Made by a program: the position numbers and the translations under genes
Part shown: positions 6,013 through 37,022 of the stretch, piece by piece
Layout: each line of letters opens with the position of its first letter
How positions within the stretch are numbered: the stretch's first letter is position 1
DNA from: Basidiobolus meristosporus CBS 931.73
Lineage: Eukaryota; Fungi; Basidiobolomycota
DNA length: 44,552 bases
Direction: 5' to 3'
NCBI GenBank assembly: GCA_002104905.1
Contig: MCFE01000692.1
Location: forward strand, 1-44,552
Notes under the pieces: generated by a model
What the model was told of the DNA's origin: nothing
Database searches by the model: none
What the model saw: only the letters and a program-made list of their open reading frames with translations

Positions 6013-6349
6013 TGTTGTCAGAGTCTTGGAGAAATTGGAAGTGATTGGGAGAACAAGTAGATTGTGCGGTTTTCACTTAATAAATTATTGAATGTAAAAG
6101 GAATATAATCTTTATACTTTTACATGGTCTTGGTATTACAAACATGTAGAATAGGTTAAAGAAGGTCCCAAGAACATGTGTGCAAAGTTTTGGGCTGTTT
6201 GGACAACTTATCTAATCTTCATGTTCTGGGTAAATATTTTAAGTAAATTCCAACAGCAAATTTGGTCAGTATTCCCTAGGATTTGAAGGTAATGATCCAA
6301 GTGATCAAGTTAAGTGAATATTTAGGTGGAATTACAAATTTTTATAGCA
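6013..6349 (-). repeat. 3' LTR of the copia element
   Basis: Alignable by eye with 9229-9577 and adjacent to the PPT. Confidence 0.85.
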
Positions 6350-9228
6350 CTCCCACTCAGCTAAATGCTCATACTGACTAGTCCTAATTTTGACCAAAGG
6401 TATTCAAACTTCTCTCTAGCTAATGGCTTGGTAAATATGCCTGCAATCATTTCATCTGAAGGACAGTAAACTAAGCTAGCTAAGTTATTCTCTATAGCCT
6501 GATGTATTGAATGATGTCTAATATGTATGTGCTTAGTTCTAGCATGAGAAGTTGGATTTCTACCTAATTGTATACATCCTTGATTATCTTGAAATCAAGT
6601 AATAGGTGTTTTTTGACATAGGCCTAAATCTGCAAAAAGCTTTCTTAACCACATTGCTTCTTTTGTAGGCTCACAGGCTGCCATATACTCTGCCTCTGTA
6701 ATGGAAAGTGCAATGGTTAGTTGCTTTCTTGAATTCCACAATATTGCTCCTTTACAGTAAAGAAAGGTGTATCCTGTAGTAGATCTTCTGACTTCCAAAT
6801 TTTGTCCTCAATGAGCATCAGAGTATCCCACAAGATCCTGCTCTAAATCCTTATAAGTGTATCTTAAGCAGATATCAGCAGTTTTTTTTAGGTATCTAAA
6901 AATCCACTTAACTGCTGCAATATGATCAGATCCATATTTCTGATTATGCTGGCTGATAACTCCCACTGAATATGAGATATCTGGATGCATTTCCAGCACT
7001 AAGCCCACTTGATTTGGTTGAGTTTTGACCAAGTTAAGGTTTGTCTCCATTGGGGTAGCTGCCAGTTAAAAGTCTTCCATTTGGTACTTCTTTAGTATAT
7101 CTTGAATATACTTGGATTGGCTTAGGGTGATAGTCTGGGTACTTTTGTCTATGGAGAACTTTATCCTAAAGTAGTAACTGTGTTCTCCTAGATTGGACAT
7201 CTTGAGCTCTTTAGACAAGCTGGATTTAGTCTCTTCCAATGTATTGAGGTTATTGGTGGCTATAATAAGATCATCCACATATCAAGCTAGTTGAACTGGA
7301 TTTGCTCTATCTGGTTTATAGTATATTCCATAGTCAGCATTACTCCTTTTGAAACTCAAAGATTCCAAATAAGAATCTATCATGCAATTCCAGGCTCTTG
7401 GTGATTGTTTGAGAACATGTAGAGACTTTTTAAGCATGCAGACCAAATGGTGGTTATCTTGGTCAACAAACCCATCAGGCTGGTCCATGTACATGTCCTC
7501 ATCAAGTTTTCTATTCAAAAAAGCAGTTTTTGCATCTGTTTGATGTATAAAAAACTTATATTTGGCTGCAATAGCCAATATTAATCTAATGGAACTAAGC
7601 TTGGCCACTGGTGCAAAGGTCTCAGCATAGTCAGGTCCTTCTGTCTGAGAGTATCCTTTGGCAGCAAGTCTTGCTTTGTATCTTTCATTTGAACTATCAG
7701 CCTTGTATCTTGTCCTGAAGACTCATCTGCATTCAATGGATTTTGGTTGATTGGTAATTTGACTAAGTCCCAAGTTTGATTTTCCATTAGGGCCTGACAT
7801 TACTCAGTCATTGCAGATCTCCAAAACTTCATCTGAGGGCTATTTAGGGCCCCCTTTACAGTCTGGGGCTCATCAATATGGACTGAATAGGCATAAGCTA
7901 AGTTTGTACCCTCATTAATATAGTAATTTGGGCTATTTCTGGTCTGGTTGGATCTCTGGGCATTTGATATCAGAATGATTACATACGGGATATTCCTGGG
8001 CACTGATTCAGGCTGAACCATGGTTGTAGAGTCCTCTGGAGTGACAATGTTTTCATTGTTTTGCTCTGATTTAATCCTGACTATTGGCAGACTTGGCTTC
8101 TCTGCTTTTGTATTGTAGAGTCTGTATGCTTTACTTTCATTGCAGTAGCCCAAGAATATGCATTTTACACTTTTTGGCTCAAATTTTGACTGATTTCCAG
8201 GCAGTTTCTTGGCATATGCTGTACACCCAACTATTCTTAGATCTTCTGCACTTGGTCTGTATCCATACCATGCTTCAACTGGAGTAGAATCACAAAGTAC
8301 TCTGTTATAACTCCTATTCTTAAGGTATACAGCTGTGGCAACAGATTCTGCCCAAAAATCATAGGATAATTTTTGATCATGAATCATAGATATTGCCATA
8401 TTGATAATTGATCTGTTTGCACATTGTGCTACTCCATTTTGCTGTGGGGAGTATGATACAGTTGTCTCTTGCTTTATCCCATGAGTTTTGCAGAAGTGGA
8501 TGAAGAGTTTTGAAGTATATTCTCCACCATTGTCTGAGCGTATTCTCTTTTTGGGTATCTTCTTTGTTGGTTATCATGGCTTATTAAAGCATTTTCTTCT
8601 TCCTTCTTATTAGCATTTGATTTTCTTAATTCTTCATCCAGGAGCCTTCCATATACTTAATCTAAGGTCAAATCCTCAGTTCTGTACTCTAGGGCTGATA
8701 CAAGGCCCTGAAACTTGTCTGTCAGGCTAATCAGGATGGTAACTATCAAATCCTCATCAGTAGTTGGTACACCTACAGATTCTATCACATTCACCAGCAG
8801 GGTAATTCTGTTATTTAGATTTTTCATTTCTTCTCCTGGCTGCATCTTTGTAGTAAAGAATTTTTGTCTCAGATACATTTTCTTAGCAGCTGAACATGAC
8901 TGGTAGGTGTCTTCTAATGCCTTCCAGGCATTCTTTGCCACTTTTGCTCTTGGGCATTGAATTAGCAATTTGTCTTTAACATTGAGGCAAATGCAGTTGA
9001 AGGCACTTTGTTCTTTCTTCTGGTACTTTAAGGCTTGCTCTCCCACATTTTTAGGAGGGCATTCTTCTCCCATGACAATATCCCAAAGGCCTCATTCTTG
9101 TAGCAGCATCTTCATCTTTACCTTCTGCACTTGGTAGTTAGATCCATCCAACCTTTTCAGCAGAGGGAGAAATTCCAGTAATAGCAGTAGTAGACATTGC
9201 AGAGAGTGACAGCTTGGGGCTCATAACC

Positions 9229-11070: not shown

Positions 11071-12132
11071 TCAAGCTTTTTTGGGTGTAGGTCTATAGAC
11101 ACCGACGACCAAAGCGTGGTCCCTCTCGTAAGGTTCAAGGGTGAGTTGCTCTTGGGGCTTGATCCGTTCCTGCTGCAACTTTTTGACCTCAGAGGCAAAC
11201 ACCTTCACGGCCTCGACCGTCGAGTCGATGCAGTTGGCCTTGATGGAGATGACAATGTGGCCACCGGCCTTCAAGAAATGATGAGCGTTTAGTGAAATGA
11301 TACGCGCTTGGTCGGGCTGGGCAACGTCGGCAAACACAACATCTACCAAGTCGATCAACATGCGGTATTTATGGGGATGACGAGCATCCTCAATAATAGG
11401 GATGACGTTGGTGCGCTTCTTGGCCATGTTAATCAAGTCACGGCCAGAACGATGCGAGAATTCCACAGCATATACCACACCCTGAGGGCCGACGATATCA
11501 GCGACGTGTGAAACGGTGGTGCCACTGGAGCCGCCAAGATAAAGGACTCTGGACCCGGGGGTGATATGAATGTTGTCAACGCCACCCAAGATACCAGCGG
11601 CCAGCTTGGAGCGGAAAGGATTCCATACGCGGTACTCGACTTTAGTGCCATCGGGCCCTTCCACTGAGACTCGTTTTTCCCCGTACACCGATTCTCCAGG
11701 AGTGAGATTCTTGGTTACCAGAAGATCTTCCTTGCCGCGAGCGATGAAGACCCCTTCATGTCTGTGCGGCTCAACTACCACTTTGGAGCCACCTTTGGCG
11801 CCTGCATTACCGCCACGGCCTCCGCGTCCACCTGAGCGTTGTACAGTATTGAGTTTCAATCTCGCCTAGTATGAATGGTACGCAAACCTGTATTTACCAC
11901 GGGCACCACCACGGGCACCACCTCGACCTCCACCACGTCCGCCGCCAAAGCCACCACGGGCACCGCCTCGACCTCCACCGAAACCGCCACGTCCGCCGCC
12001 GCGACCACCCCCACGACCGCCTCGGAAACCACCACGACCTCCACCACGATTATCTATTGAATCGAAGAAAGCATTAAGCAAGCGGTCCGCCTCGAAGACA
12101 GGAAACCCCGGCGGGAACTAACCAAAAGCCAT
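11071..12132 (-). CDS. NOP1: Fibrillarin, box C/D snoRNP rRNA 2'-O-methyltransferase
   Basis: N-terminal GAR (RGG) domain, then [25 protein letters not shown]...[14 protein letters not shown]...[15 protein letters not shown]...[13 protein letters not shown]. Introns at 12054-12122 and 11832-11897. Confidence 0.97.
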
Positions 12133-14952: not shown

Positions 14953-17900
14953 TTACTCGCCGAGGTTTTGGTGTTGAACCATGGTGAAGTATTTCTTCTT
15001 CATAGCCATCAGCTCCTGATGACTCCCTTCCTCGAGGATTCTCCCTCCTTCAAAGACGAAGATTCGATCGGCGTTCTGTATGGTGGAAAGTCTGTGTGCC
15101 ACAGCAATGGTAGTTCGTCCAGATGCAGCCTGCAACAGTAGGTTTAATGACAGAAACTTGAGGCAGTATTTGATGGATTCCGCTTACCTTGTTCAGAGCA
15201 CTCTGCACCAACTTCTCACTATGTGAATCGAGAGCCGACGTGGCCTCATCTAGCAAAAGAATCTGCGAGCTGTTGGTCAATTAGTCCTTCAAGCAATCAT
15301 ATGACCCAACCTACCTTGGGATCCCGGATTAATGCCCGGGCAATTGCTATGCGTTGCCTCTGGCCTCCACTAAATTGGGAGCCCTTGGTTCCACACTCGG
15401 TATCATAGCCATTTGGCAAAGACATGACATAGTCGTGAATGTTGGCTTGTTTGCAAACCCTTTCGACATCCTCTTGCGCAATATCGTCACGATCAGTGCC
15501 AAGCAAAACATTGAAGCGAATGCTACCCTGGTACAATACTGGCTCTTGACTAACAAGAGCGATTCGGCTTCGATGTGCACGGATATCGTGGGTGCGAATA
15601 TCCTCGTCATCAACGACCACTTGTCCACTGAGGGGGTCGTAAAATCTGGTTCGAGAGAACGCCCTGGTGAATCCATAGCCCGCATTGCTTCCCAAAAATT
15701 TCGCTTACCTTTCGATTAATGAGATGACCGTACTCTTCCCACACCCACTCTCACCCACGAAGGCGCAAAACTGGCCTGGTTTTATCTATTTGTCGTGTCG
15801 TTAGTTAGTACCAGCCTTGAAATCACGCAATACTCGGAAACGAACCGTTATGCTAAGCCCCTGGAGGACTGGGGTCTCTGGGCGTGACGGGTACCGGAAA
15901 TGAACATCCTTCAAAGTGATTGCGCCCTTGGTCTCGATGCCCTTGGTTTGGATGACTGCCGTTGGCTGGCTGTCGATCTGGGGCTTTTGGTCAAGAAGCT
16001 GGAACACATTTCCAGCCGCGATCTTGGCCTTGGTTAGATCGGGTGCCAGAGAGAACATCTGGCCAGATGCTTGCGCACTGAACAGAAGGGCTGGAAGCAC
16101 GATGAAAAACTCCGTCGAGGTATATTCCCCCCTGCTAATCAACTGAGAGCCCCACCTTTTGAATTAGAAAGTGCGTTGAGAAGTCGTCCTTGACAAATAG
16201 CATTCGGTCAGCACATACCAATACGCCAGAGAATAGATAAGATAGGATATGCTGTAGCCAAGCGCAAGCCAGAAGTTACCCGTCATGATCGACCGCAGGC
16301 TGTCGCGATACGGCCCTTCCAAGCTTTCGTGGTACAGCCGGCAAACATCACTCTCGCGGGTAAGAGCCACAACAGTCTGGATCGCGCCAATTGCCTCACT
16401 GGCCAACGCTGCAGACTTCACGTATGCGGTTTGATGGCGTTGCTAAAGGGGCAATTTATGAGCTTGAACGACCTCAGATCCAGCCAGACAATCCCCGAAA
16501 CTTACATGGAACAGGGCCACAATCCGAACACGTAGGAACCCGGAAGCCAACATCACGGGCACAGCGGCCAGCACAACAATGGCAATCTTCCATGCTACCA
16601 CGTGGGCAAGCGTGATCCCGGCAATCAAATTCGTAATGATCGAAAAGACGGTGCCTATAACGACACCAGTAAGACCGCCCATGTAATTCGCATCGGTGTT
16701 GATCATGGAGATCAAGGTCCCCGTGGAGTGCGCCTCGTCGTCAAACCATGCCATATCCTGGCTTACAATCGATCTGCGTGTGTAGGGGTCAGCAATCGAT
16801 CGGCTGGGAGATCAGATTCATATGGAGTGTACCTGAATGACATGCTGCGGATTCTCCATAGTAGTCGTTCCGAAACCCAGCCGAAGGCGCTTCCGTTGAT
16901 GGAATAAGCAAAGAGCACGACCACGGCAATCATGAAAAACCCTAGATCCGTATGAAATGAGTACTGAGTTCAAGAAACCTCGATGGTCGTGCACTCACAG
17001 AAGCTGTAGAAATCCACGTCGTGACGCAGCTGTGTTGGGTTTTCGGTTTGGCTGAGCGCCTTGATCATCTGCGCAAAGAGCACTGCCTCCACAGAATAGA
17101 CCCCACCGATGATGATCGACGCTAAGTCATGGTATGATTAGTAACGGGCCTTGGAATAATGCCGTTCTCCTCGCTTACTTATAACCCCAGCAAGAACAAA
17201 TAGTGCTTCCGGTCGGCTAGTAGCCATCATGCGCTTGATAATAGTGGATGTACCGAACTGTCGCGGGGTCTCTGTCTCTTTGACTGGAGTCAATGAAACT
17301 GATTCATCCGCCATATAAGACTTCTCCGAGGTAACTCCTGATTTGTGGTCGACGATAAACTCTCCTTTTTCTCGTGGATACTGCGTTGCTGCTTTTTCGG
17401 TGAGGACAAGCTCCTCATCAGTGGTATCAGAATCCAAAGCTTCATAGGAGAATCGTTGTGTTTCTACCAATTGGTAGTAGGCAGATTGGCGAGCAATAAG
17501 CTCGTCATGTGACCCTTGTTCTATCACTTTACCTTCAGCCCTGTGAACGTTCAGAATAAACAGTTGAGTACGAGTTCTTCACTGATGGTTGAGTAGCTCA
17601 AGGCAATACTCACATAACCACAATATTGTCGGCCTTTCTTATTGTCGTCAGCCGATGGGCGATGATGATGGTGGTTCGATCCTTGGTTGCATGCTCCAGA
17701 GCATCTTGGATGAGGCGTTCACTTTGTGTATCTAGTGCGGATGTAGCCTTGGTCTACGTCAGATCGATCGATTCGACACCAACGTGGCGGGATGTCCTTA
17801 CCTCATCTAACAGCAAAACCGTTGGATCGGCAACCATAGCTCTTGCCAGTGCTATTCGCTGCTTTTGCCCACCAGATAGCAATAGGCCCCCCTCACCCAC

Positions 17901-19788
17901 AATGGTATTATAGCCCATTGGTAGCTTGGATATAAAGGTATGAGCATTTGCCTGGCGGGCGGCCACTACACAGAGCTCCTCGATTTTGTCCCGCGATTCC
18001 TGATTCCGCTTACTATGTAACAATCCATGGGCAATATTGTCCATGATCGAGGTATTGAAAAGAACAGGAGTTTGCATAACCAAGCTCATTTGGCAACGAA
18101 GCCAATGGATATTCAAGTCCTTGATGTTGATACCATCAAGATAAATGTCACCTTCGGTTGGGTCGTAGAAACGCTCTAGGAGACTCACTTTGGGGGTTTT
18201 AACGAACCGTTAGTCTTGCCATATATATCAACCATACAGATACAAGGGTTACCGATTGTCGATTTCCCAGATCCAGAAACACCCACTATGGCCGTGGTCT
18301 TTCCACAGGGTACATCCAAGTCGATTCCTTTAAGCACTTTGATATCAGGACGACTAGGATAACAAAAAGAGACTTGACGAAACTCTATGGTCCCTTGGCA
18401 TTCGGTAGGTTTTACTCCTTCACTAGACGAGCTATCGATTGGCGAAACGCGATCGATAGTCTGAAATAGCTTCTGCCCAGCCCCCGAGGCCAACGAGAAA
18501 GTCTGCAGAAAGGGGGAAAACTGGCCAATAACGAAGGAACCTAAAATAGCAGAAGTATAAGCACAAGTGGCCAATGGCGTAATAAGCAGACTTCCCACAT
18601 ACTATCTAAAACCAGAAAAATCACTGTATAAACGGTGCCTGCGCCTTCCAGTGAACTGGATACAATGAGTCTAGACCCTTCCCAAAACGCCAAGGCATTA
18701 GCGGAATAGGCAACGAAGAATATCCCACCAAGCATAAGCGCGCCTGCGATGGCCTTGAGAAGGCCTTGTCGCTGAGCTAATGTTAAATAGTGATCGTAAA
18801 GCGCCGATAGCCGATCTTGCGAATTGAATGCCTGTGCAACACGGACATTGGCAAACACCTCCTCCGCTAACGTGCTGGCCTTCGAATGCTGGTCTGAAAC
18901 ACGAGCGGTGTATTTTGAGATAACAAACGAGCCGCCCACCATGACAACAATGAAAACAGGTACAACGGAAAACATGATTCCGGTCAGAGTGGCGTTCTTC
19001 ACGAAGCCTACAGTGAAGGCAGCCAGAAAGTAGGAGATCGATTGAATGAAGATCCCCACCTTCTCTGATGTGCCGTTCTGTATGGTTTGGGTGTCACTGG
19101 TGATACGACTGGATACCTACGACGAAGGGGTCACGTTATTCATCTTGGAAGAATTGCCATTGATTGGTCTGACAACTACCTCGCCTGCACCAAGTTTGTT
19201 GAAGTACGCGATGTTTTGTCGCAATACTGCTCGGAGATAGTTTTCACGGAGTTTCCGTGTCAGCCGCTCCCCTATCAGACTCCAGCATACAGTGTATGTG
19301 TATGTCAACAAAAAGTAGCCAATTGCGACATAAATAAGCTTCAACACCTTGTCGTTGACAGCCTCCTTGAAGATACTGGCTTGGTATGCAGAGAGGGGAG
19401 AGGACGTTTCGGAAAACTGCCTTGAGAAATCATTGATCAGGTCTCCGAACAATATACCAATAAGCGGAAGTGGAACACCAGCACCTAGAGCACATACGAC
19501 TCCAACTATGAGGAGGAGTTTGTCGAACGCTGTCGAGTATCTGTAGAGGCTAAAGTATCCGGCTCTTCTCGAGGGACTTCCTGTGGCGAGAGTATCTTCA
19601 TTCTGCTCCTCTACAAATCGACGCTGTTGCTCCCCCAGAATAGAGATAGGTTCTATGATTACTTTATCTAACTGTTTTGACTGCTCCGGGTTTCGGGCAT
19701 TTGGCTCGTTAAGGGATATCCCGAGTTCGTCATTATTCTTGCACGACTTTTCAGCTTCCGACATTCCATCTCCGGACTGAGTATGCAT
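14953..19788 (-). CDS. Full-length ABCB (MDR/P-glycoprotein-type) transporter, multi-exon; candidate siderophore exporter
   Basis: TMD-NBD-TMD-NBD layout. NBD1 has GVSGSGKST and [14 protein letters not shown]; NBD2 has [40 protein letters not shown] and [10 protein letters not shown]. The start may be 19788 or 19764 and exon boundaries were not fully resolved. The siderophore role is inferred from context only. Confidence 0.9.
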
Positions 19789-19968: not shown

Positions 19969-20058
19969 TTATCTGATTCAGTACTCCAAGTAGTGTACCA
20001 CAACTCTAAATATAATTCGCAGATCATGATCTGATAAATTGAGAAAGTAATCAGATAA
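19969..20058. promoter_or_regulatory. Three ATCWGATAA iron-GATA-repressor-type sites upstream of the ABCB gene
   Basis: TTATCTGAT 19969-19977, ATCTGATAA 20029-20037 and ATCAGATAA 20050-20058, plus near-match ATCTGATAT 19877-19885. These match the SreA/Fep1/Urbs1-class consensus. Confidence 0.75.
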
Positions 20059-21509
20059 CCTGATGTACATTGGTTCGGGAATTTACCACCATATTAAGAA
20101 GTCTGTTGGAATGTTTATTTCAGTTTTATATTAGGTGGATTTTTTTGGGATATAACGCCTGAGGCGCCATTTCGAATCAAGGTCATGTAATTTGTGCTGG
20201 ATGGAACAAATAGTAATCAGCAAAATAAAGGATTTCCCCGAAAGGATGCGTGCGGTTAAACACTCCTATATATAGGCAGGTTTGATATTGTTTTAGATCA
20301 AACTTCGTTGGAGTAAATCGTTGGAAAGCATATTCACTGACTAAGCAAAGCTTCTGATCCCTAGCAAATGCAGTTACAGCTTACTTGGCCATAAGCCGGT
20401 GGATATGTAACAAGGCTATCGTAAACTAGATTAATACCTGCTCTCGTTGAGCCCCATTATCATTTTGCGGACCTTACACCTTTGAAGCACATTTCGATGC
20501 TCCAACTTCTTTCAGCTAAAGCAGTAACCAGAATAATGAAACAGGGCAAAGGGATCACCGATCACTGCCCTATCCAGACCTCACCAAATACAACAATGCA
20601 TTAAGAATTGATACCTGATGATCACTATAATGCTTATTAAAGATAATCAAACGTCGGACATATACCTGTATGTCTCGCAATCCGGGAAATACTCTACTAC
20701 GAACGGTGTTTAGCTTGACACGAATAGATATTCTAGGGTCCAGGGTGCTATATACTACAGGGCTATGTGCAGTTGGTCTATTCATGTAGCCCGTATTTAC
20801 ATTGGATATGAGAAGGGTTTGTAAATGGATGGGATGTTAATTTTCTACACAAGCTCTCACAGTCAAATAAACCCTGGCATGGTTTAGTTAATAACTCCTA
20901 TCTGTACACATTAAAAATGGTTAGAATCTCATCTCTGTACTACCCCTCTCGGTCTCCTAAGGAGGGAGGAAAATTTTTCAGCTTAAGCTCATTTGATAAG
21001 GAAGTATTGCACCGCCAATTTTTTAGAGTTGGATCACACAATTGGGAATCTCTACAACACATCGAGGAGATTCTGTTAACGAGAGACGAACTAGCTAGTG
21101 AGCCCTCCTCAATAATACAGCTGTAGAAGGATCTGCAGTGGTATCTTTACAAGCATGGCCACGAAAGAGAGAATACCGATTCCTTAACCATATGCTAATG
21201 AGGTAACCAATAGGACACCGTGTACCCTGACCCTTCACAGAAATGAAGATCTCGGATAAACCCAGAAGAAAATAGGCATGAGTTTCTCCCATGTAGAAGG
21301 CAAGTTTTGGCTGCTGAGTGAAGGCATCATCAAGTGTATTGTTAAAATAGAATGCATATCTCTTCTAAAAAGCGACCAAAGCCATTACGACATTTCCATT
21401 CAATGCCTAGCGCCTGGATCGCCTTGGTTGGTAGAGTACCATCTTGGTGAGCTCTGATTGGGTAATTATGCATAGCGATATATTAGCTCTGAAGGCTCAT
21501 AGGAACTCA

Positions 21510-21847
21510 TTATCAGATTTGCTACGAACAATGTTAATTCATGATCGTGAAAACAATTTCATATAGATTCATTTATGGGAAACTTAGAATGGGGCTAGAG
21601 AATCTGATAGCCACCACACTATTCAAATTAGGGTGCACGGCATTTTAGGAAATCGTTTTCAAGCTGCTACCACCTAGCTGCATGTCACCATTATCTACTC
21701 GGCCTTGGAGTAACCTATCCGGAAATAGCACTTCATTGGTACGCTGTCGGCATGATCCGCTGCCCCCAAAAGTTCCAAGATATAAAAACTTCGTCCTCCT
21801 TGAACAGCGATATTCATTCCTACTATTTCTTCTAACGGATCTGATAA
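21510..21847. promoter_or_regulatory. ATCWGATAA sites and TATA box upstream of the monooxygenase-acyltransferase fusion
   Basis: TTATCAGAT 21510-21518, near-match ATCTGATAG 21602-21610, TATAAAA at ~21781 and ATCTGATAA 21839-21847 just before the ATG. Confidence 0.7.
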
Positions 21848-21859
21848 CCTTATTCAGCA

Positions 21860-24130
21860 ATGGCAGCAGGACACGAAAGCGAGTACACTAACGAGTACGA
21901 TATCTTGTCAGTAGGCTTTGGACCAGCGGGGCTCTCCATCGCTATTGCGCTTACCGAGGCTGAAGGAGCTTCGCGAAATGGCAAACTCTCCCAGGAACAT
22001 CTACGGGTTTGCTTTATTGAGAAGCAGGATTCCTTTGTTTGGCACGAGGGAATGCTTCTGGAAGATTCCAAGATGCAAATCAGTTTCCTCAAAGACCTGG
22101 CCTCGATGCGTGACCCTAGGAGTTACTTCACCTTCCTTAATTATCTTCATCAGAAGCAGAGACTACTCTCATTTTCGAACTTGGGCTCCTTCTACCCCTA
22201 CCGCTCCGAGTATAATGACTATATGGCATGGGCTGCTTCCCATTTTGCCGATGTCTGTCATTTCGGAGAGCAAGTTGTTTCCATTGAGCCCGTCGTTACT
22301 GAGCGAACTCAGGTGGTAGAACGCTTGAAGGTTACATCAAAAAGGCTGACTGACGGAGCTAGTATTGTGCGAATCACCAAGAACGTGATTGTAGCAGTTG
22401 GAGGACAGCCTCACATCCCTGAGCTGATTGCTGAATATAATGCAAAGGACCTCCAGAACTACAATCGGATTATCCACTCCTCCCAGTATGCATATCGTGT
22501 ATCCAAGTCGCTCCCAGATAATGATTGTGCTTATTCCATTGCTGTGGTTGGAGGTGGCCAAAGTGGAGCCGAGATATTCTATGATTTGACCTCTCGTTAT
22601 CCCAATTCACGCGTGTCCCTTGTTCTACGCGATACGGCCTTACGCCCATCAGATGATAGCCCCTTCGTGAACGAAATATTCGATCCCTCATTCACTGACA
22701 CCTTCTATAACATGTCCCCTGAAAAGCGCCAGGCCACGTTGAAGCGCGAAAAAGCCACCAACTACTCAGTAGTTCGTCTCGAGCTGATTGAAAGGATATA
22801 CGGACTTTTGTACAAGCAGAAGCTTCCTGGACACTCGGAGCAACATAAGATCCTCTGCTCTCGCAAGGTTCTTTCGGTCATTCCTTCGGAGGACAGTGTT
22901 ACTTTGAAGCTGGTAAGCACCGATGAAACCGGACCAAAGGAGAACATTGGCGTTGAAACCGAGCATAAGTTTGATGCGGTCTTCTTTGCAACTGGCTACG
23001 AAAGACACCTCCACAAAGAGATTCTCGGCCCCATGTCCCCTTACTTATGCACTGATGAGAATTCCCAAATGTTGCTTCAAAGAGATTACCGACTTCAAAC
23101 CAACTCCAATTGTCGTGCTGGTATTTACCTCCAAGGGTGTTGTGAAAGTACCCATGGACTTAGCGACTCCCTTCTTTCTGTGCTCCCCATCAGAGGTGCT
23201 GAGGTCGTACAGTCTATGATCGACAATGACCCCAGCCTTCGCAGCGTAGTCTCCGCCGGATCTGCCCTGGAAAAGGAGTTATCATCCGCCTTCCAAAAGA
23301 GTGGAACCGATCGCAAGGCTGAGAAAACTACCGAGGAAAACGCACAGAATTCCACTCTTCCATCCCCACCATCCACAAGACCACTCACACCTACTGGTGA
23401 TGAGCTTTGGGAATGGGTTGAGGATGTCGACTCGGACAACGCTAGCTTCGGGTGGTTGCGCTACTCTGGCCCTTCTATGGATTTCAACAAACATATTGAT
23501 GGTCATCCTCCTCGCGTAGCCAGACCTCCAGCAGGCCAATTGCTATACCGCCGCTATATTCCCGCACTTGGGCAAAGCTTATCTCTCAGAGTGGCTAGCC
23601 TAGAGCAGGATATTGACCATTTCCACCGTTGGATGAATGACCCTCGAGTTTCTAAGTTTTGGGGTGAAGATGGCCCAATTGAGCATCAAACGAAGTATCT
23701 TTCCGGTTTGCTGGAGGATAGCCATGCCATGCCGGTGATTGGGCTCTTTGATGATGAATGCTTTGCATACTTCGAGATCTATTGGTCTAAGGAAGATAGA
23801 CTTGGTAAATACTACGAAGCTGAGAACTTCGACCGTGGAATTCACATGCTGGTTGGTGAGCAGAAGTTCCGTGGTCCCCATCGTGTGGAAGCATGGATCC
23901 CATCCTTGGCCCACTACATTCTCTTGGACGACGCACGCACTCAAAGAGTAGTTTCGGAGCCAAGAGCAGACAACGATAAAATGATTGGATATCTTCAGAA
24001 GTACGGCTTCGAGAGACACAATGATATTCAGCTACCACACAAGCGTGCCGCGTTGATGATTTTGCCTCGTGAGCATTTTGCCGAGACCAAAATCGGATCC
24101 AAACTATTCCGCTCAGCCGAGTCAAACTAG
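21860..24130 (+). CDS. Bifunctional L-ornithine N5-monooxygenase (SidA/PvdA-type) fused to an IucB/AlcB-type N-hydroxy-amino-acid acyltransferase; intronless, 756 aa
   Basis: The N-terminal part has VGFGPAGL (FAD), MQISFLKDL, VVGGGQSGAE (NADPH), RPSDDSPFVNEIF, ATNYSVV, FATGY and HGLSDSLLS. After a S/P-rich linker, the C-terminal part has RWMNDPRV..FW, YFEIYWSKED, DRGIHMLVGEQKFRG, EPRADN and PHKRA. Confidence 0.92.
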   Translation: MAAGHESEYTNEYDILSVGFGPAGLSIAIALTEAEGASRNGKLSQEHLRVCFIEKQDSFVWHEGMLLEDSKMQISFLKDLASMRDPRSYFTFLNYLHQKQRLLSFSNLGSFYPYRSEYNDYMAWAASHFADVCHFGEQVVSIEPVVTERTQVVERLKVTSKRLTDGASIVRITKNVIVAVGGQPHIPELIAEYNAKDLQNYNRIIHSSQYAYRVSKSLPDNDCAYSIAVVGGGQSGAEIFYDLTSRYPNSRVSLVLRDTALRPSDDSPFVNEIFDPSFTDTFYNMSPEKRQATLKREKATNYSVVRLELIERIYGLLYKQKLPGHSEQHKILCSRKVLSVIPSEDSVTLKLVSTDETGPKENIGVETEHKFDAVFFATGYERHLHKEILGPMSPYLCTDENSQMLLQRDYRLQTNSNCRAGIYLQGCCESTHGLSDSLLSVLPIRGAEVVQSMIDNDPSLRSVVSAGSALEKELSSAFQKSGTDRKAEKTTEENAQNSTLPSPPSTRPLTPTGDELWEWVEDVDSDNASFGWLRYSGPSMDFNKHIDGHPPRVARPPAGQLLYRRYIPALGQSLSLRVASLEQDIDHFHRWMNDPRVSKFWGEDGPIEHQTKYLSGLLEDSHAMPVIGLFDDECFAYFEIYWSKEDRLGKYYEAENFDRGIHMLVGEQKFRGPHRVEAWIPSLAHYILLDDARTQRVVSEPRADNDKMIGYLQKYGFERHNDIQLPHKRAALMILPREHFAETKIGSKLFRSAESN

Positions 24131-25043
24131 CTCGCCGAAGACTGAAGCATAGCCATGACCCATGCACTATACAACCTAGCACTCGTTTTCATAGAGTATT
24201 CAGTGATCATAATTATTGACAAATCCTATATTCAAATAAAGCCTAACCGATGTATATTTTACACCTGCTGCCCTTGAACATGAATTTCATCTCAGCTGTG
24301 GTACGCGATGCAGCCAAACAAATGCTTCCGTGTCTTCAATGATGGCGCGCTGCATACCTGGCATTCCACTACGATGTTTCGCTGATGCAGCCGTGGTCTG
24401 CGTTGTTGTTCCTGTGTGATCTAGAGTAATACAACCACTGCAATCATTATCTAAATCCCGCCACTCAAAATCAGATAAGTCCAATCATTTGATCTGATAT
24501 TCGGGTGTGAAACATTACACTAGATACAGCAGTGAGACGGATCTCAACACCAAAGATCTATTCGCTCCTACATGCACAAATATAGACTATACTTCCTGTT
24601 GTGCCTCAGATATATAGTGCTTGTAGAATCTGATTACTCCAGCTGGTTGAATAGGACAGCACGTTGGGCCAAGCTAGAGTTAGCCGTGTTGATGCAGAAT
24701 CTGACTCACGGGATTGTTGATAATTTTAATTCCATATATCCAAGTGTTGCTCAGATTAGCAAGTCCCCAGCAGGACCATCTCCGTATATAGGCTACAAAT
24801 AAAACCCCAAACAACGTCGGTATTGGAAGAGAGCAAGTCCATTTGTGCTGGGATTCTTGGCAGCATGCAGACCCGAGGTTGAACAAGGACTGGTATGGAA
24901 AGTAACGCACACGTCTGTATGGTACAGTCACCGTTTTATTATTGAATACCCATTCAGTGTTGAATAATACATGCATATACTAGCGCAAACAAACATCGAT
25001 CCCACGAAACAATCCAACGCTATGTAGTTCTATAGGCCCCTTT

Positions 25044-26373
25044 TCAATGTGCTGAATGGGACAGTTCGTAGCCGAAAAACCGCCAGAACTTTGCAACGCC
25101 AACGTCCTTTTTGAATATGCTAGTAATGAAGTCACCAACGACAATGAAGCCAATCTGTGCAACGCCTCCGGTACGCCCAACGCTAAACGAGATCATTTGC
25201 ATTGGGGCCCGGAATCTGCTCAGTTTCTGCATTGGCTTACCGACTTGCTGAAGAATGAGCTTGAATATATTATCTGCAGCAATTGTTCCTTGTCTATATG
25301 CAATCCCAGCCAACTTTTCACTCCACATGTTACAGACATCTCCAGCTGCAAAGATATGGGCGAGCTCGGAAGACTCCAGTTGCATAGTAGGTAGAACTTT
25401 GATGAGCCGGCTCTTCTCCTCGAGCACGCCTCCGTACTTGCCGTCCAAGTTTTTCAGGAACGAGGAATTGGGATCGGCGCCGAAGCAAAGGAACTAAATA
25501 CAAAAGAGATGGTTAGAAACAATATATGTCCCAGCATTGATAAAGCCAACAAACCTGAATATCAGTTTCAAATACCCTCCCACTAGTTGAGGTCCAGGCC
25601 CTTCTGGTGTAATGTGTCTTGGTCAAGTCCTCTTGTGAGAATATGAGGCGTTCATTAAATACCACCTCTACTCCACGTTTAGTCAAGCTCTTGTGTGCTT
25701 GAGATCTGCATCTATCCGAAACGTTTCCAGGTAGAAGTTTATCACGGCTGTGAATAAGGGTAACCTTTTTCTCCGGAAAATCATCTGCGATCTCGCCGGC
25801 AAGTTCAATTCCATTGCATCCTCCACCAACAATTAAGACATCCTTCGCTCCCTTAATTGCCTCGATTGTTTCTTCTGCAATTCGAATGCCGGTCTTCTTG
25901 TTTAATGATTGGGTATCAATGGGTGTTGGGTACGACAACCCGGAAGAGACCATCAGATAGTCAAATGCTACGGTTTCTCCAGATTCAAGGATCACCTCGT
26001 TTTTACGAACATCTTTGACAGAGGCGTTGACGACTTTGTGCTTCTTATCCTTGAAGAGCCTGTCGCGGGGGATCCACAGTTTCCTGGCAAATCCATTCTC
26101 GACCATCGCCCGGAACGCACCAATGATGAAATAGAACTCTTCTTTCTCATCGATCATCGTGATCTCCACGTTGTAGCTGCCGCATTTTTTCTCGAGCAAT
26201 TTGGCAGCACCAATTCCACCAAACGATGCACCTATGATAACGATTTTGATGGGTGCCTTCAATGCCATCAGTTCCGCGATTTTTTTGCTCGACGCTATCC
26301 AGTAATAGCTCACAACAAGTCCAACACCTGTGGCAATAGAAGCGATTATAGAGTTCATGGTTTGATGATCCAT
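25044..26373 (-). CDS. AIF/AMID (FSP1-like) FAD-dependent pyridine nucleotide-disulfide oxidoreductase with N-terminal membrane anchor
   Basis: IVIIGASFGG, DYLMVSSG, VLIVGGGCNGIELAGEI and IFAAGD. Hydrophobic N-terminus IIASIATGVGLVVSYYWI. One intron at 25494-25554. Confidence 0.88.
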
Positions 26374-26491
26374 TCCATTCCTTGATTTTAAAGCTAATTT
26401 ATGGCATCTGATCGGGAAAATGGCTATGTATTATCCCATGAAGTGCTGCATGGACATGCACAAGGTTGTAATCAGGTGTTACATGAAAAGG

Positions 26492-26649
26492 ATCTGATAA
26501 ATGTGTACAGAAAATATACAGCTATTTGATATAAGAAGATGCACTAATGGTTTGACTCAATATAAGATTTATTATGACTCCTTTTATATAGGTTTTTTTC
26601 GTTATCAGATCTATGATGGTTATGACAAATATTACTTTCGTTATCAGAT
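26492..26649. promoter_or_regulatory. Three ATCWGATAA sites upstream of the oxidoreductase
   Basis: ATCTGATAA 26492-26500, TTATCAGAT 26602-26610 and TTATCAGAT 26641-26649. A minus-strand TATATAAAAG lies at 26581-26590. Confidence 0.75.
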
Positions 26650-28256: not shown

Positions 28257-29624
28257 TTAGAGACGGTGGATAGATTTTCCATCAACAAATACTTCGATGA
28301 TGTTGCGATCGTCGCCATTGTTAATGAATTTCTCGAAGGTGGTCTTGATATCATCATGATCGAATAGGTCAATGGGGGATCCATGGGAAAGTGGATCAAT
28401 GATCAGAGCATCGAACTGCTTCCCTACCACGAAGTTCCCGATCGAGCTCTTCATACCGAGCACATCTGCACCGCCAAGGGTAGCGAGATAGAACATCTCG
28501 GCCAGCTTGAGGTACTTGTCGTTGGGATGCTCGAAGCTACGGGCGATGGCAGAGAAGTAGCCATTGCGGATGTTGTTAAGGATGGAGGGGCTGTACCCGC
28601 CAGACACATCCGTACCAAGACCAAGCTTTTGACCCTCACTCAGCATCTGACGAATCTTTGCGATGCCGCTTCGCAGACTGAGGTTGGAGTTGGGGCAGTG
28701 AGAGATGCCTGCGTCTCTTTGCTTCAACAGCTGACGCTCAGCATCACTTGGGTACACCACGTGGGCCATGATGGTTCGGTTCGTCAACAGGCCATGGGAG
28801 TCGTACACTGAGGTGTAGTCAGGCTGATCAGGGTGGAGCTGCTTGACCCAGGCAATCTCGTCGAGGTTCTCGTCAAGATGCGACTGGATCGGGACATTGT
28901 ACTTTGTCGCGAGTGCACTCAGTCCTCTCATCAACTCACTCGTGCATGAAGGCACAAAGCGAGGGGTGACAATAGGGGCGACCCGTGAGTTCTTCTTTCC
29001 CTGGACATATTGGATGAAGGCCTCGGTGTCTTTCAGACTCTGAGCGGTGGTCTCGATCAGGTAGTCAGGGGAGTTGCGGTCCATGTTGACCTTTCCTACG
29101 AAGGCTCGCTGTCCCCTGGAGGCCACAATGTCGGCAAGCGCCTTCGAGGCCTCCAGGTGGATGGTGGCGTAGTAGCTTGCGGCCGTGGTGCCGCTTCGGA
29201 TCACTCTGTCGATAACCTTGCTGTACGCGCTCCTGGCATAGTTGGTGTTGTTGAATCGAGACTCGCGGGGGAAGGTGAAGGTGTTGAGCCAGTCCAGCAG
29301 CTGTAAATCCATCCCGGAGCCGGTGAATACATATTGTGGAGCATGGATGTGCGTGTCGATTAGTCCAGGCATGAGAAACTTCTGGTTACCTAATGGGAAG
29401 AGACTGACACCGTACTTGCGGGCAATTTGTTGTGCCTGACTCGCACTGGCATTGGTCTCCACCTGGATGATCTTTCCCGACCTATCCACAGCAATGACCC
29501 CATTGGTAGCATGCTCCAACGAGGTGACATTGACAGAATGGACAAAGTTGCCGTAGAACACAGTCTGGGCAGAAATCGACCCAATCAAGGTGGCAGATAT
29601 AATGGCAAGAGAGGTAAGATACAT
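28257..29624 (-). CDS. Guanine deaminase (amidohydrolase family) with predicted signal peptide, copy 1
   Basis: PGLIDTHIHAPQY, QSHLDEN, MAHVV, SHCPNSN, LGTDVSGG and NGDDRNI, all GuaD/Gud1/cypin-type motifs. Intronless, with N-terminus MYLTSLAIISATLIGSISA-Q. Confidence 0.9.
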   Translation of the reverse strand: MYLTSLAIISATLIGSISAQTVFYGNFVHSVNVTSLEHATNGVIAVDRSGKIIQVETNASASQAQQIARKYGVSLFPLGNQKFLMPGLIDTHIHAPQYVFTGSGMDLQLLDWLNTFTFPRESRFNNTNYARSAYSKVIDRVIRSGTTAASYYATIHLEASKALADIVASRGQRAFVGKVNMDRNSPDYLIETTAQSLKDTEAFIQYVQGKKNSRVAPIVTPRFVPSCTSELMRGLSALATKYNVPIQSHLDENLDEIAWVKQLHPDQPDYTSVYDSHGLLTNRTIMAHVVYPSDAERQLLKQRDAGISHCPNSNLSLRSGIAKIRQMLSEGQKLGLGTDVSGGYSPSILNNIRNGYFSAIARSFEHPNDKYLKLAEMFYLATLGGADVLGMKSSIGNFVVGKQFDALIIDPLSHGSPIDLFDHDDIKTTFEKFINNGDDRNIIEVFVDGKSIHRL

Positions 29625-30598: not shown

Positions 30599-31966
30599 AT
30601 GTACCTTACGTCTCTTGCCATTATATCTGCCACCTTGATTGGGTCGATTTCTGCCCAGACTGTGTTCTACGGCAACTTTGTCCATTCTGTCAATGTCACC
30701 TCGTTGGAGCATGCTACCAATGGGGTCATTGCTGTGGATAGGTCGGGAAAGATCATCCAGGTGGAGACCAATGCCAGTGCGAGTCAGGCACAACAAATTG
30801 CCCGCAAGTACGGTGTCAGTCTCTTCCCATTAGGTAACCAGAAGTTTCTCATGCCTGGACTAATCGACACGCACATCCATGCTCCACAATATGTATTCAC
30901 CGGCTCCGGGATGGATTTACAGCTGCTGGACTGGCTCAACACCTTCACCTTCCCCCGCGAGTCTCGATTCAACAACACCAACTATGCCAGGAGCGCGTAC
31001 AGCAAGGTTATCGACAGAGTGATCCGAAGCGGCACCACGGCCGCAAGCTACTACGCCACCATCCACCTGGAGGCCTCGAAGGCGCTTGCCGACATTGTGG
31101 CCTCCAGGGGACAGCGAGCCTTCGTAGGAAAGGTCAACATGGACCGCAACTCCCCTGACTACCTGATCGAGACCACCGCTCAGAGTCTGAAAGACACCGA
31201 GGCCTTCATCCAATATGTCCAGGGAAAGAAGAACTCACGGGTCGCCCCTATTGTCACCCCTCGCTTTGTGCCTTCATGCACGAGTGAGTTGATGAGAGGA
31301 CTGAGTGCACTCGCGACAAAGTACAATGTCCCGATCCAGTCGCATCTTGACGAGAACCTCGACGAGATTGCCTGGGTCAAGCAGCTCCACCCTGATCAGC
31401 CTGACTACACCTCAGTGTACGACTCCCATGGCCTGTTGACGAACCGAACCATCATGGCCCACGTGGTGTACCCAAGTGATGCTGAGCGTCAGCTGTTGAA
31501 GCAAAGAGGCGCAGGCATCTCTCACTGCCCCAACTCCAACCTCAGTCTGCGAAGCGGCATCGCAAAGATTCGTCAGATGCTGAGTGAGGGTCAAAAGCTT
31601 GGTCTTGGTACGGATGTGTCTGGCGGGTACAGCCCCTCCATCCTTAACAACATCCGCAATGGCTACTTCTCTGCCATCGCCCGTAGCTTCGAGCATCCCG
31701 ACGACAAGTACCTCAAGCTGGCCGAGATGTTCTATCTCGCTACCCTTGGCGGTGCAGATGTGCTCGGTATGAAGAGCTCGATCGGGAACTTCGTGGTAGG
31801 GAAGCAGTTCGATGCTCTGATCATTGATCCACTTTCCCATGGATCCCCCATTGACCTATTCGATCATGATGATATCAAGACCACCTTCGAGAAATTCATT
31901 AACAATGGCGACGATCGCAACATCATCGAAGTATTCGTTGATGGAAGGTCCATTCACCGGATCTAA
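30599..31966 (+). CDS. Guanine deaminase with predicted signal peptide, copy 2 (inverted near-identical duplicate)
   Basis: Same motifs as copy 1. The two 455-aa translations differ at only four positions. Confidence 0.9.
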   Translation: MYLTSLAIISATLIGSISAQTVFYGNFVHSVNVTSLEHATNGVIAVDRSGKIIQVETNASASQAQQIARKYGVSLFPLGNQKFLMPGLIDTHIHAPQYVFTGSGMDLQLLDWLNTFTFPRESRFNNTNYARSAYSKVIDRVIRSGTTAASYYATIHLEASKALADIVASRGQRAFVGKVNMDRNSPDYLIETTAQSLKDTEAFIQYVQGKKNSRVAPIVTPRFVPSCTSELMRGLSALATKYNVPIQSHLDENLDEIAWVKQLHPDQPDYTSVYDSHGLLTNRTIMAHVVYPSDAERQLLKQRGAGISHCPNSNLSLRSGIAKIRQMLSEGQKLGLGTDVSGGYSPSILNNIRNGYFSAIARSFEHPDDKYLKLAEMFYLATLGGADVLGMKSSIGNFVVGKQFDALIIDPLSHGSPIDLFDHDDIKTTFEKFINNGDDRNIIEVFVDGRSIHRI

Positions 31967-34900: not shown

Positions 34901-35720
34901 GTTGGTCATTAGACTTTGCCGTTTGTCTATTGGTGAAGCGGCAATTGTCCTTTCTGTTGGCTGATCTGATCTCGATCCGTATGCTGGCTACTCTATCATT
35001 CATCACCGACACTTCTCATTACTAACCTCTGATGATCGTATCGACAACGTCGAAAGTCACAACTGTGTAGTCGGTTTTTCATAGAATGATCAAATACTCG
35101 ATTCTACATATGTTCCTAGCGTGATCAGAATAAATAATCAGTAATATATTATCATTCCCTATCACTCGATCATCTATCTTTCTTTACGCCAATTTCGAAG
35201 CAAATATTGCCGTAGACGTAGTTGTACTGGTATTTATTGAACACTGCCCTTCATAAGCACTATTGGATATCGACACATACTGCTTTGATGTATGCGAAAG
35301 TGATTACAGGAATCGTCTGTGGAAGTACATATTAACTGGTGTTCTGTCTTATTTGCCCGCTTCCACTATTTATGGAATATAGTAGTTCTCATGCTTATCG
35401 GATGTGAAGAAACGATACCGTTATGGTCAAGCACAACTACAGGTAGCTCACATGAGTCTGATTAGAGTCATACCAGTATAGAGTATGGATTCCTGATGTT
35501 AGCAAGTAGGTCCCTAGCCTCCAACCTGATCAAGTGAACCCGTTGGGTAGTATGGTGTAGCACAAGCATATCTAATGGATATACCTTCCATAACGGTAGA
35601 CTCAGCTCTGTACCAAAATGGTTATATTTGCGTTGTACCACCAGCATGTTGTGTGCAATTCCTCATATAAATAAGCCTGCCTGTAATCCAAGATTGACCA
35701 TCTCACAATCTCTATATACA

Positions 35721-37022
35721 ATGAGGCTTAATTCTCCAATGATGCAGGTCATATTAGTTGGCTTTGCATGTTTCTGCTGCCCGGGTATGTACAATGTAAT
35801 CAACAGTCTAGGTGCCGGAGGACAGATGGACGACAACACCACTAAGAATGGTAATGTTGCTCTTTACGCTTGCTTCTCTGTATTTGGTGTGTTCGGTGGG
35901 GCCATTCACAATGTCCTCGGTGGGCGTTGGACTATGGTTAGCGGCGGTCTCACGTACGCACTGTACTCTGGTTCCCTTGTATATTATAGCAACACCAAAG
36001 AGCCCACCTTCGTCATTATTGCTAGTGCAATTCTAGGTATTGGTGCTGGTATGTTCTGGACTGCCCAAGGTACAATTATGATGTCCTATCCATCCGAGAA
36101 TCAGAAAGGCCGCGCAGTCGGAATCTTCTGGATTATTTTCAACATGGGCGCCGTACTCGGTTCTTTCATTCCCTTCGGCCTCAACTTCCATTCCTCAGCA
36201 GGACAAGTGAGCACCGCTACCTACTATGTATTGATGGCACTTATGGTTATTGGTGCTCTGCTTGGCTTGGGCCTCATTCCCCCCGAGAGGGTAGTACGCG
36301 AGGATGGTTCCCGTGTGCAAGTCTCCAAATTTGAAAACGTCGGTGGTGAGATCATTGAGATCCTGAAACTATTCAAGAACAAGAACATGCTCTTGCTCCT
36401 CCCCTTGTGCGTCACTTCCAACTGGTTCTACTCTTATCAGTTCGGTGCTGTAAATGGTGTTCTTTTTAATGTTCGTACCCGCTCATTCAACAGTGCCTTC
36501 TACTGGGGTGCTCAAATGATTGGCGCCTATGGGGTGGGTCTGTTGCTCGATAATCCCAAGCTTCAGCGTCGCACTCGTGCCTTATACGGACTTGCTCTGG
36601 TAACCGTACTAACAATGATCATATGGGGCGGTGGTCTTGGTCTTCAAGTACAATATACTCGGGAAGATCATCCTAAAGACATCGATTTCATCAACGGCCC
36701 AGGATGGGGCGGCAAGTTTGCCTTATATCTGTTCTACGGTTTTCTGGATGCCGTTCTACAAACTTATGCTTATTGGTTAATGGGTGCTCTCTCTAATGAC
36801 AGTCACGTCCTTGCTCGTTATGCTGGATACTACAAAGGACTCCAATCTGCTGGCGCGGCTATTGCCTGGGATATTGATGCTAAGAATACTCCTTTCTTGA
36901 CTCAGCTGATCATCAACTGGGTACTGTGCACAGCCTCCCTTCCTTTTGCTTACATTGTAGCCAGAGGTGTCAAGGATACCTCAGAGGAGGATGGTGAGAA
37001 GGTCGAGATGGAAAAGTCTTAA
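35721..37022 (+). CDS. UNC-93-like / DUF895 MFS-type membrane protein
   Basis: QVILVGFACFCCPGMYNVINSLGAGG, GLTYALYSG, GAGMFWTAQG and ARYAGYYKGLQSAGAA, with multiple TM segments. Intronless. First ATG at 35721. Confidence 0.85.
   Translation: MRLNSPMMQVILVGFACFCCPGMYNVINSLGAGGQMDDNTTKNGNVALYACFSVFGVFGGAIHNVLGGRWTMVSGGLTYALYSGSLVYYSNTKEPTFVIIASAILGIGAGMFWTAQGTIMMSYPSENQKGRAVGIFWIIFNMGAVLGSFIPFGLNFHSSAGQVSTATYYVLMALMVIGALLGLGLIPPERVVREDGSRVQVSKFENVGGEIIEILKLFKNKNMLLLLPLCVTSNWFYSYQFGAVNGVLFNVRTRSFNSAFYWGAQMIGAYGVGLLLDNPKLQRRTRALYGLALVTVLTMIIWGGGLGLQVQYTREDHPKDIDFINGPGWGGKFALYLFYGFLDAVLQTYAYWLMGALSNDSHVLARYAGYYKGLQSAGAAIAWDIDAKNTPFLTQLIINWVLCTASLPFAYIVARGVKDTSEEDGEKVEMEKS

Follow-up and report, generated by a model that had tools for sequence, protein, structure and literature searches.

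The window analysed here is the whole of contig MCFE01000692.1 (44,552 nucleotides; nt) from Basidiobolus meristosporus CBS 931.73 (assembly GCA_002104905.1), which carries a single uninterrupted and intronless open reading frame (ORF) of 756 codons, starting with ATG, at positions 21860..24130 of the forward strand. A first-pass annotation, made from the letters alone, had read this ORF as a complete SidA/PvdA-type monooxygenase joined to a single IucB-type domain, and the ORF scan and the full-length Pfam matches agreed with that reading. The features of the ORF, together with the gene models deposited for the same region, are as follows (aa, amino acid residues; AF2, AlphaFold2; pLDDT, predicted local distance difference test score).

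21860..24130, + strand: predicted bifunctional ornithine N5-monooxygenase / N5-hydroxyornithine acyltransferase ORF, 756 aa (ORF scan, Pfam)
21860-23221: deposited model A, 454 aa, without a stop codon (deposited gene table)
21896..23227, + strand: SidA/PvdA-type flavin monooxygenase domain, aa 13-456 (PF13434, SidA alignment, Foldseek)
21914..21931, + strand: FAD-binding dinucleotide motif GFGPAG, aa 19-24 (read from the sequence; aligns with SidA GFGPAS)
22550..22567, + strand: NADPH-binding motif GGGQSG, aa 231-236 (SidA alignment)
22628-22630, + strand: NADPH 2'-phosphate arginine R257, equivalent to SidA R279 (SidA alignment)
23255..23401, + strand: disordered tether, aa 466-514 (AF2 pLDDT about 30)
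23357-23392, + strand: conserved tether motif LPSPPSTRPLTP, aa 500-511 (identical in B. ranarum)
23477-24130: deposited model B, 217 aa, with an internal ATG start, Met540 (deposited gene table)
23498..24115, + strand: IucB/MbtK/SidL/SidF-type GNAT acyltransferase domain, aa 547-752 (PF13523, SidF alignment, AF2)
23600-24034, + strand: PF13523 Acetyltransf_8 core, aa 581-725 (Pfam E = 1.3e-54, profile positions 2-145 of 145)
23843..23845, + strand: putative catalytic base His662, in DRGIHMLVGE (invariant in 14 fused proteins)
23957-23959, + strand: putative partner acid Glu700, in SEPRADN (invariant in 14 fused proteins)

The N-terminal part matched the Pfam profile PF13434 (Lys_Orn_oxgnase) at aa 13-381 (E = 3.6e-106; profile positions 3-338 of 339), and its closest solved relative by sequence was Aspergillus fumigatus SidA (E = 1.7e-120, SidA aa 40-484, about 46% identity), followed by PvdA (E = 8.8e-110). 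The predicted fold of this part gave Foldseek template modelling (TM) scores of 0.82-0.87, normalised to the target, against solved members of the family, with 0.82 to the SidA structures, and no listed Foldseek chain spanned both halves of the predicted fusion structure. In the 14 fused proteins, G19, G21 and P22 of the GFGPAG motif are nearly invariant, and G231, G233, Q234, S235 and R257 are invariant. SidA residues K107, N293, N323 and S469 align with K78, N271, N301 and S440, which are invariant or nearly so in the same 14 proteins, and SidA M101/Q102 align with M72/Q73. In the SidA crystal structures, these four SidA residues are the ornithine contacts and R279 binds NADPH. By its profile match, motifs and substrate residues, the N-terminal domain is a predicted SidA/PvdA-type L-ornithine N5-monooxygenase.

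For the C-terminal part, the closest solved relative by sequence was A. fumigatus SidF (E = 1.3e-53, SidF aa 240-435), and the AF2 model of the GNAT domain was confident over about aa 556-752 (pLDDT 84-95), with alternating beta and alpha elements. The motifs quoted in the first-pass annotation (RWMNDPRV..FW, YFEIYW..EDR and DRGIHMLVGEQ) are all present. His662 and Glu700 lie 38 residues apart, the same spacing as in the catalytic pairs H248/E286 of Sib3 and H130/D168 of Rv1347c (PMC11424930). The profile, the predicted GNAT fold and the His/acid pair are those of the PF13523 siderophore acyltransferases, of which the C-terminal domain is a predicted member. The acyl group transferred would most likely be acetyl, as suggested by the lack of anhydromevalonyl-CoA genes nearby and by the slightly closer relationship to one of two ascomycete-basidiomycete (Dikarya) clades, described below as clade A. 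No SKL-like peroxisomal signal is present at the C-terminus, which ends in ...RSAESN.

The two domains are connected by a tether that we examined in an AF2 model built on 14 fused homologues (mean pLDDT 75.5). The first-pass annotation had placed a disordered linker at about 23220-23500; the disorder was borne out, but its extent was smaller, with pLDDT of about 30 over nt 23255-23401 only, and a short beta-hairpin (aa 517-535) leads into the GNAT domain. Comparison of the tether with that of B. ranarum gave pS of about 0.67-0.71 (saturated) and pN of about 0.26, corresponding to a dN/dS of roughly 0.15-0.20; every indel consisted of whole codons, and the 12-residue motif LPSPPSTRPLTP is the same in the two species. 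These values indicate that the tether is coding and under purifying selection. The linker region at aa 456-580 matched Basidiobolus proteins only, apart from the first GNAT residues of two Dikarya proteins, and no homology was found to the N-terminal extensions of IucB, of the 337-aa bacterial GNATs or of SidF/SidL.

The stretch of 255 nt separating deposited models A and B is in frame and free of stop codons, it is the sole open frame among the six, and a stretch of this kind was open in just 3.4% of 20,000 shuffles. A start at Met540 would remove the beta-hairpin that precedes the GNAT core in the AF2 model. The orthologue from B. ranarum, whose N domain is 77% identical to that of the window copy, reads through 663 codons without a stop, covering the monooxygenase, the linker and the GNAT part as far as the motif FAYFEIYW, at which point its 4.7-kb contig stops. 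A paralogue in the same assembly, K493DRAFT_293676, is deposited as a 735-aa fusion. In this paralogue the frame shifts within the linker (11376-11419 of the stretch examined), and therefore a single intron is placed exactly between the two domains; there is no intron in the window copy or in the genes of Spizellomyces and Rhizophlyctis. On the evidence of the reading frame and its homologues, the deposited split is a mis-annotation in which one gene was called as two, probably an artefact of homology-seeded gene models.

A full-length word search listed 13 other proteins that have both domains in the same order, namely those of B. ranarum, the B. meristosporus paralogue, Spizellomyces, Powellomyces (two genes), Phlyctochytrium (two species), Nowakowskiella, Rhizophlyctis, Dinochytrium, Globomyces, Chytridiales sp. 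and one metagenomic protein. We also searched 1.84 billion cluster representatives exhaustively with phmmer, which gave 2,885 matches, and the best 150 were inspected for their architecture. Nine of these 150 were monooxygenase-GNAT fusions, every named one from an early-diverging fungus, and the search added Kappamyces and Conidiobolus coronatus (782 aa; monooxygenase aa 10-449, GNAT aa 514-691) to the carriers. Chytrids, Basidiobolus and Conidiobolus thus supply at least 15 further proteins of this architecture, with more than 10 chytrids among the carriers, so that the fusion is not unique; as judged from domain architecture, the window protein is a member of a fusion family that is widespread among early-diverging fungi. 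No Dikarya or bacterial protein with the monooxygenase-then-GNAT order was found among the matches listed in the word search or among the best 150 of the 2,885 phmmer matches, and the ESM Atlas contained no cluster of at least 50 members with both PF13434 and PF13523.

A fusion in the reverse order was found in the actinobacterium Lentzea flava (WP_189253289, 598 aa; GNAT aa 25-167, monooxygenase aa 185-516). This fusion appears to be independent because of its reverse order, its 30-35% identity and its position outside the fungal/PvdA group, which indicates from sequence comparison that the hydroxylase and the acyltransferase were fused at least twice. Other arrangements were also seen, including a tandem double GNAT in Derxia and monooxygenase plus FMN_bind_2 fusions in actinobacteria, and the top match in the ESM Atlas was an unrelated bacterial Pyr_redox_3 plus Acetyltransf_1 'ArsN2' fusion, which we note as a lead only. 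The GNAT domain is absent from the models of Chytridium lagenaria (573 aa), Fimicolochytrium (464 aa, partial) and B. ranarum (582 aa), the N domains of which fall within the fused clades. The B. ranarum model was shown to be truncated at the contig end, and the other two may be truncated models as well.

The genes and sites flanking the ORF are as follows (no strand is given for the sites).

14953..19788, - strand: ABC transporter, 1329 aa, with introns, divergent from the fusion ORF; candidate exporter of siderophores or with another iron-related role (ABC_membrane and ABC_tran domains, two of each)
19969..20058: three ATCWGATAA sites in the upstream region of the ABC transporter gene (motif scan)
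21510-21518 and 21839-21847: two ATCWGATAA iron-GATA-type sites upstream of the fusion ORF (motif scan)
24470-24478: one ATCWGATAA site where the fusion and reductase genes converge, flanked by their 3' ends; an unusual position for a promoter element
25044..26358, - strand: Pyr_redox_2 flavin reductase-like gene (AIF/FSP1-like), 417 aa, downstream of the fusion ORF (gene table)
26492-26649: three ATCWGATAA sites upstream of the Pyr_redox_2 reductase (motif scan)

Iron repressors of the SreA/Fep1/Urbs1 type in fungi recognise the consensus ATCWGATAA. This motif occurs nine times in the window where 1.52 occurrences were expected (none of 100 shuffles reached nine), and all nine sites fall in 19969-26649, in the intergenic regions of the transporter-fusion-reductase trio. 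The reductase, for which a ferric-siderophore reductase or a redox partner are candidate roles, is a probable third member of an iron-regulated module. At the locus of the paralogue K493DRAFT_293676 we found a collinear paralogue of the ABC transporter, mostly 59-78% identical across exon-sized pieces. ATCWGATAA occurs five times at this locus, each time within the divergent promoter, where 0.9 occurrences were expected (none of 100 shuffles reached five). The collinearity and the sites indicate that a transporter-fusion module with an iron-regulated look was duplicated, and the duplication predates the split of B. ranarum and B. meristosporus because both species have both copies.

No NRPS (non-ribosomal peptide synthetase) gene was found within 10 kb of this paralogue. 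In Spizellomyces, the intronless fusion gene divergently adjoins a 4,914-aa NRPS starting with A-T-C-A-T, and in Dinochytrium the fusion gene divergently adjoins a 6,116-aa NRPS. A divergent NRPS neighbour is the classic layout of a siderophore cluster, and these chytrid NRPSs are about the size of SidC. No ATCWGATAA site was found in the Spizellomyces cluster, so the extended GATA motif is not common to that chytrid.

The remainder of the window contains two divergent Amidohydro_1 amidohydrolase genes of 455 aa each (28257-29624, - strand, and 30599-31966, + strand), which look like a local inverted duplication, and an ORF for an UNC-93/MFS (major facilitator superfamily) transporter (35628-37019, + strand), which Pfam does not place with the siderophore-iron transporter (SIT) type and which has no GATA site close by. 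A 916-aa ORF resembling a long interspersed nuclear element (LINE), with reverse-transcriptase and endonuclease domains (40723-43473, - strand), sits in the last 6 kb of the contig (38-44.5 kb), where the GC skew is strong, as would fit a telomere-associated retroelement array.

We reconstructed separate phylogenetic trees for the two domains; the N-domain tree was rooted with IucD and had no sequence from Basidiomycota or Schizosaccharomyces pombe, and the C-domain tree was unrooted. In the N-domain tree, all fungi formed one clade (support 98/99), in which the chytrid lineages branched first and Basidiobolus was sister to Ascomycota (86/87), matching the species tree, with PvdA of Pseudomonas, Azotobacter and Cupriavidus outside the fungal clade. 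The fungi still grouped together when Conidiobolus and Kappamyces were added (Shimodaira-Hasegawa-like approximate likelihood ratio test, 92). Since the fused N domains were paraphyletic to the unfused SidA of Dikarya, the most parsimonious history would be a single early fusion that was split again on the stem of Dikarya, and with this limited sampling we infer such a history.

The C-domain tree was a maximum-likelihood tree of 72 sequences; in it, the named bacteria formed one clade (93/85), apart from the long-branched Enhygromyxa, and the domain of the window lay outside this clade, not grouping with bacterial IucB. A topology in which all fused fungal C domains are monophyletic was not rejected by an approximately unbiased (AU) test (delta lnL 2.3, P = 0.32). 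AAC(6')-Ib was considered as a root for this tree and dropped as too distant (about 24% identity). In a common trimmed alignment, the identity to the window C domain was 53.8% for the paralogues, 53.1% on average for bacteria, 52.3% for Dikarya clade A, 48.4% for IucB, 47.9% for chytrids and 45.1% for Dikarya clade B, which has the length of SidF. The first-pass annotation had considered the C-terminal motifs closer to IucB than to SidF; this holds weakly when IucB (48%) is compared with the SidF-length clade (45%), but not for the second Dikarya clade (52%), and SidF is the best solved match.

Taking these results together, we consider it likely that the ORF encodes one bifunctional enzyme which makes the hydroxamate building block of a siderophore, and which belongs to a fusion family vertically inherited within early-diverging fungi and is not a recent import from bacteria. 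Several points count against this reading. The deposited annotation of the contig splits the ORF into two models, and the single transcript is a prediction from the genomic sequence. Neither an NRPS nor an NIS (NRPS-independent siderophore synthetase) gene was found in the 44.5-kb window, which makes the link to a particular siderophore indirect, and the acyl-CoA specificity is not readable from the sequence. The AF2 model has two confident domains but a predicted TM score of 0.55 and no confident inter-domain geometry, so that coupling or channelling of the two steps is a conjecture. In the C-domain tree, the window domain stood with the paralogues, the chytrid fusion clade (95/86) and Dikarya clade A on an unresolved backbone, and the grouping of the Basidiobolus and bacterial C domains was disfavoured but not formally rejected by the AU test (delta lnL 13.0, P = 0.073).

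If the deposit were right, there would be two genes and two proteins, the monooxygenase ending at about aa 454 and the acyltransferase starting from Met540 through an internal promoter or start codon, and the intervening open frame would be incidental. The two deposited models and the presence of Met540 are in accord with this, but model A lacks a stop codon, the 255-nt gap continues the frame, which is the only one of the six to be open, the linker is under purifying selection and shares its 12-residue motif with B. ranarum, and model B would lose the beta-hairpin ahead of the GNAT core. Because the orthologue, the paralogues and about 15 homologues are moreover continuous fusions, we regard the two-gene arrangement as very improbable. 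We give an equally small chance to a product other than a siderophore block, that is, an N-hydroxy-N-acyl amine made for another purpose or from a substrate such as lysine or a diamine. Such a product would fit the lack of an NRPS or NIS gene in the window, the breadth of the PF13434 family, which covers lysine, ornithine and diamine hydroxylases, and the best NCBIfam match, a 'histamine N-monooxygenase' model that stayed below threshold. However, all four ornithine-contacting residues of SidA are kept, SidA and PvdA are by far the nearest solved enzymes, iron-type GATA sites are enriched around the gene, and chytrid orthologues adjoin large multi-module NRPS genes.

The first-pass annotation had also raised the possibility that part of the protein was acquired horizontally, and Basidiobolus is known for horizontal gene transfer (HGT) from bacteria (PMC7466969). 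In such a scenario the acyltransferase part, or a whole monooxygenase-GNAT operon pair, would have been acquired by Basidiobolus from bacteria and then fused. The raw C-domain scores agree with this, since they were 236-253 bits (53-59% identity) for GNATs of Pseudomonas and related bacteria, with 61.5% identity for a GNAT encoded on a Methylomagnum plasmid, against 193-213 bits for ascomycete proteins, and the P value of 0.073 falls short of rejecting the bacterial grouping. The higher scores are explained, however, by the short terminal branches of the bacteria and the long stems of Dikarya (0.65 and 0.83) in the C-domain tree, and in the trimmed alignment the identity to bacteria equals that to the paralogues and to Dikarya clade A. 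Bacteria also hold adjacent monooxygenase and GNAT genes in the same order, as in the plasmid pRS11DPr1 of Methylomagnum ishizawai, where the two adjoin with 144 bp between them (6064-8558 of the stretch examined). We considered this pair as a donor operon and rejected it, since its monooxygenase is IucD-like and very distant from the window N domain; the pair sits in an NRPS/PKS (polyketide synthase) cluster with MbtH, TauD and a penicillin-acylase-family gene. With the N domains of all fungi in one clade, the C domain outside the bacterial clade, the monophyly of fused fungal C domains not rejected, and the fusion common to chytrids and Conidiobolus, HGT specific to Basidiobolus is not supported by the trees, and an origin of this kind seems improbable, if slightly less so than the two alternatives above.

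If one vertically inherited bifunctional enzyme is encoded, its N-terminal part would act as a class-B flavoprotein monooxygenase that hydroxylates L-ornithine at its N5 amine with FAD, NADPH and O2, and its C-terminal GNAT would transfer an acyl group, most likely acetyl, from acyl-CoA onto N5-hydroxyornithine. The product, N5-acyl-N5-hydroxyornithine, would enter a hydroxamate siderophore through an NRPS encoded elsewhere in the genome. The flexible and conserved tether of about 50 residues would keep the two active sites in a 1:1 ratio and near each other, and the gene would probably be repressed by iron through a GATA factor of the SreA/Fep1 type, together with the divergent ABC transporter and the flavin reductase. 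That the intact fusion is functional is very probable from the conserved residues; the two activities are predicted from those residues, iron repression is suggested by the GATA sites, and the fusion may bring a kinetic benefit. Brault et al. reported co-immunoprecipitation of the unfused Sib2 and Sib3 of S. pombe; in their proposal, the complex serves to optimise steps 1 and 2, which a Sib2 tetramer bearing four Sib3 molecules would couple (PMC11424930). The contacts of the two proteins have been mapped to aa 1-135 and 281-358 of Sib2 and aa 290-334 of Sib3. Since these unfused proteins physically interact, a coupling role for the fusion is plausible, though conjectural.

As a tentative extension, the fusion may be ancestral in fungi, with hydroxamate synthesis older than Dikarya and already existing in the ancestor that these share with chytrids and Zoopagomycota, SidA and SidL/SidF (Sib2 and Sib3) derived by fission, and the Sib2-Sib3 complex a relic of the fused state. 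If true, such a history would overturn the textbook account, in which sidA and hydroxamates 'appeared' in higher fungi and are lacking in chytrids. The 'appearance of sidA' was assigned to higher fungi by Schwartze et al. (PMC4133162), a review assigns hydroxamates to Ascomycota and Basidiomycota (PMC10500206), and a preprint by Caballero et al. in 2024 reported no SidF/SidL homologues in Chytridiomycota or Mucoromycota (bioRxiv 10.1101/2024.08.20.608788). The first-pass annotation had likewise described the lineage as not usually credited with hydroxamates, which is right with regard to the reviews that limit them to Dikarya, but Tabima et al. 2020 had already credited B. meristosporus CBS 931.73 with expanded siderophore NRPSs and with activity in the chrome azurol S (CAS) assay, without mentioning the hydroxylase or acyltransferase (PMC7466969).

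The finding that chytrids, Basidiobolus and Conidiobolus carry the committed steps to hydroxamates, often beside giant NRPSs, contradicts the claims that SidA and SidF/SidL homologues are absent from these lineages (PMC4133162, PMC10500206, 10.1101/2024.08.20.608788), and makes an earlier origin of hydroxamate siderophores in fungi likely. The two activities are those of textbook enzymes that had hitherto been studied only as separate proteins, and no published description of a monooxygenase-GNAT fusion was found in the open-access PMC and bioRxiv literature. The mis-annotation of this gene in the reference Basidiobolus genome is also corrected here. The natural fusion would independently corroborate the reported Sib2-Sib3 interaction, and offers a ready-made system for asking whether coupling protects N5-hydroxyornithine or lowers uncoupled NADPH oxidation. 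Because SidA and SidF/SidL are discussed as antifungal targets, the single-chain version may also suit structural and inhibitor work.

Compared with the known systems, the N-terminal part resembles SidA of A. fumigatus and PvdA of Pseudomonas aeruginosa over the full length, in the FAD and NADPH motifs and in the ornithine residues, but these are stand-alone enzymes of about 430-500 aa, whereas the chain in the window runs for another 300 residues into the acyltransferase. The catalytic His and acid of SidF, SidL and Sib3 are conserved in the C-terminal part, which shows about 52% identity to one Dikarya clade and about 45% to the SidF-length clade. SidF has a 'unique N-terminal domain' of about 240 aa that is required for function (10.1101/2024.08.20.608788); the window protein is without it, and the monooxygenase and tether occupy its place. 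The enterobacterial IucD and IucB of aerobactin synthesis carry out the same two-step chemistry, but they are encoded by separate genes, and IucB (47-50% identical to the window C domain, compared with 61.5% for the Methylomagnum GNAT) has its own N-terminal extension of about 120 aa, which the window protein lacks. The Methylomagnum pair has the gene order of the window but consists of separate genes, and its monooxygenase, like IucD, is of the lysine type and phylogenetically far from the window N domain. The Lentzea flava protein has PF13523 and PF13434 on one chain, as in the window, but in the reverse order, at 30-35% identity and outside the fungal/PvdA group. The closest functional parallel would be the Sib2-Sib3 complex of fission yeast, in which the same two activities are physically but non-covalently associated; the window fusion, known here from its sequence, would be the covalent counterpart of that complex, 1:1 by construction.

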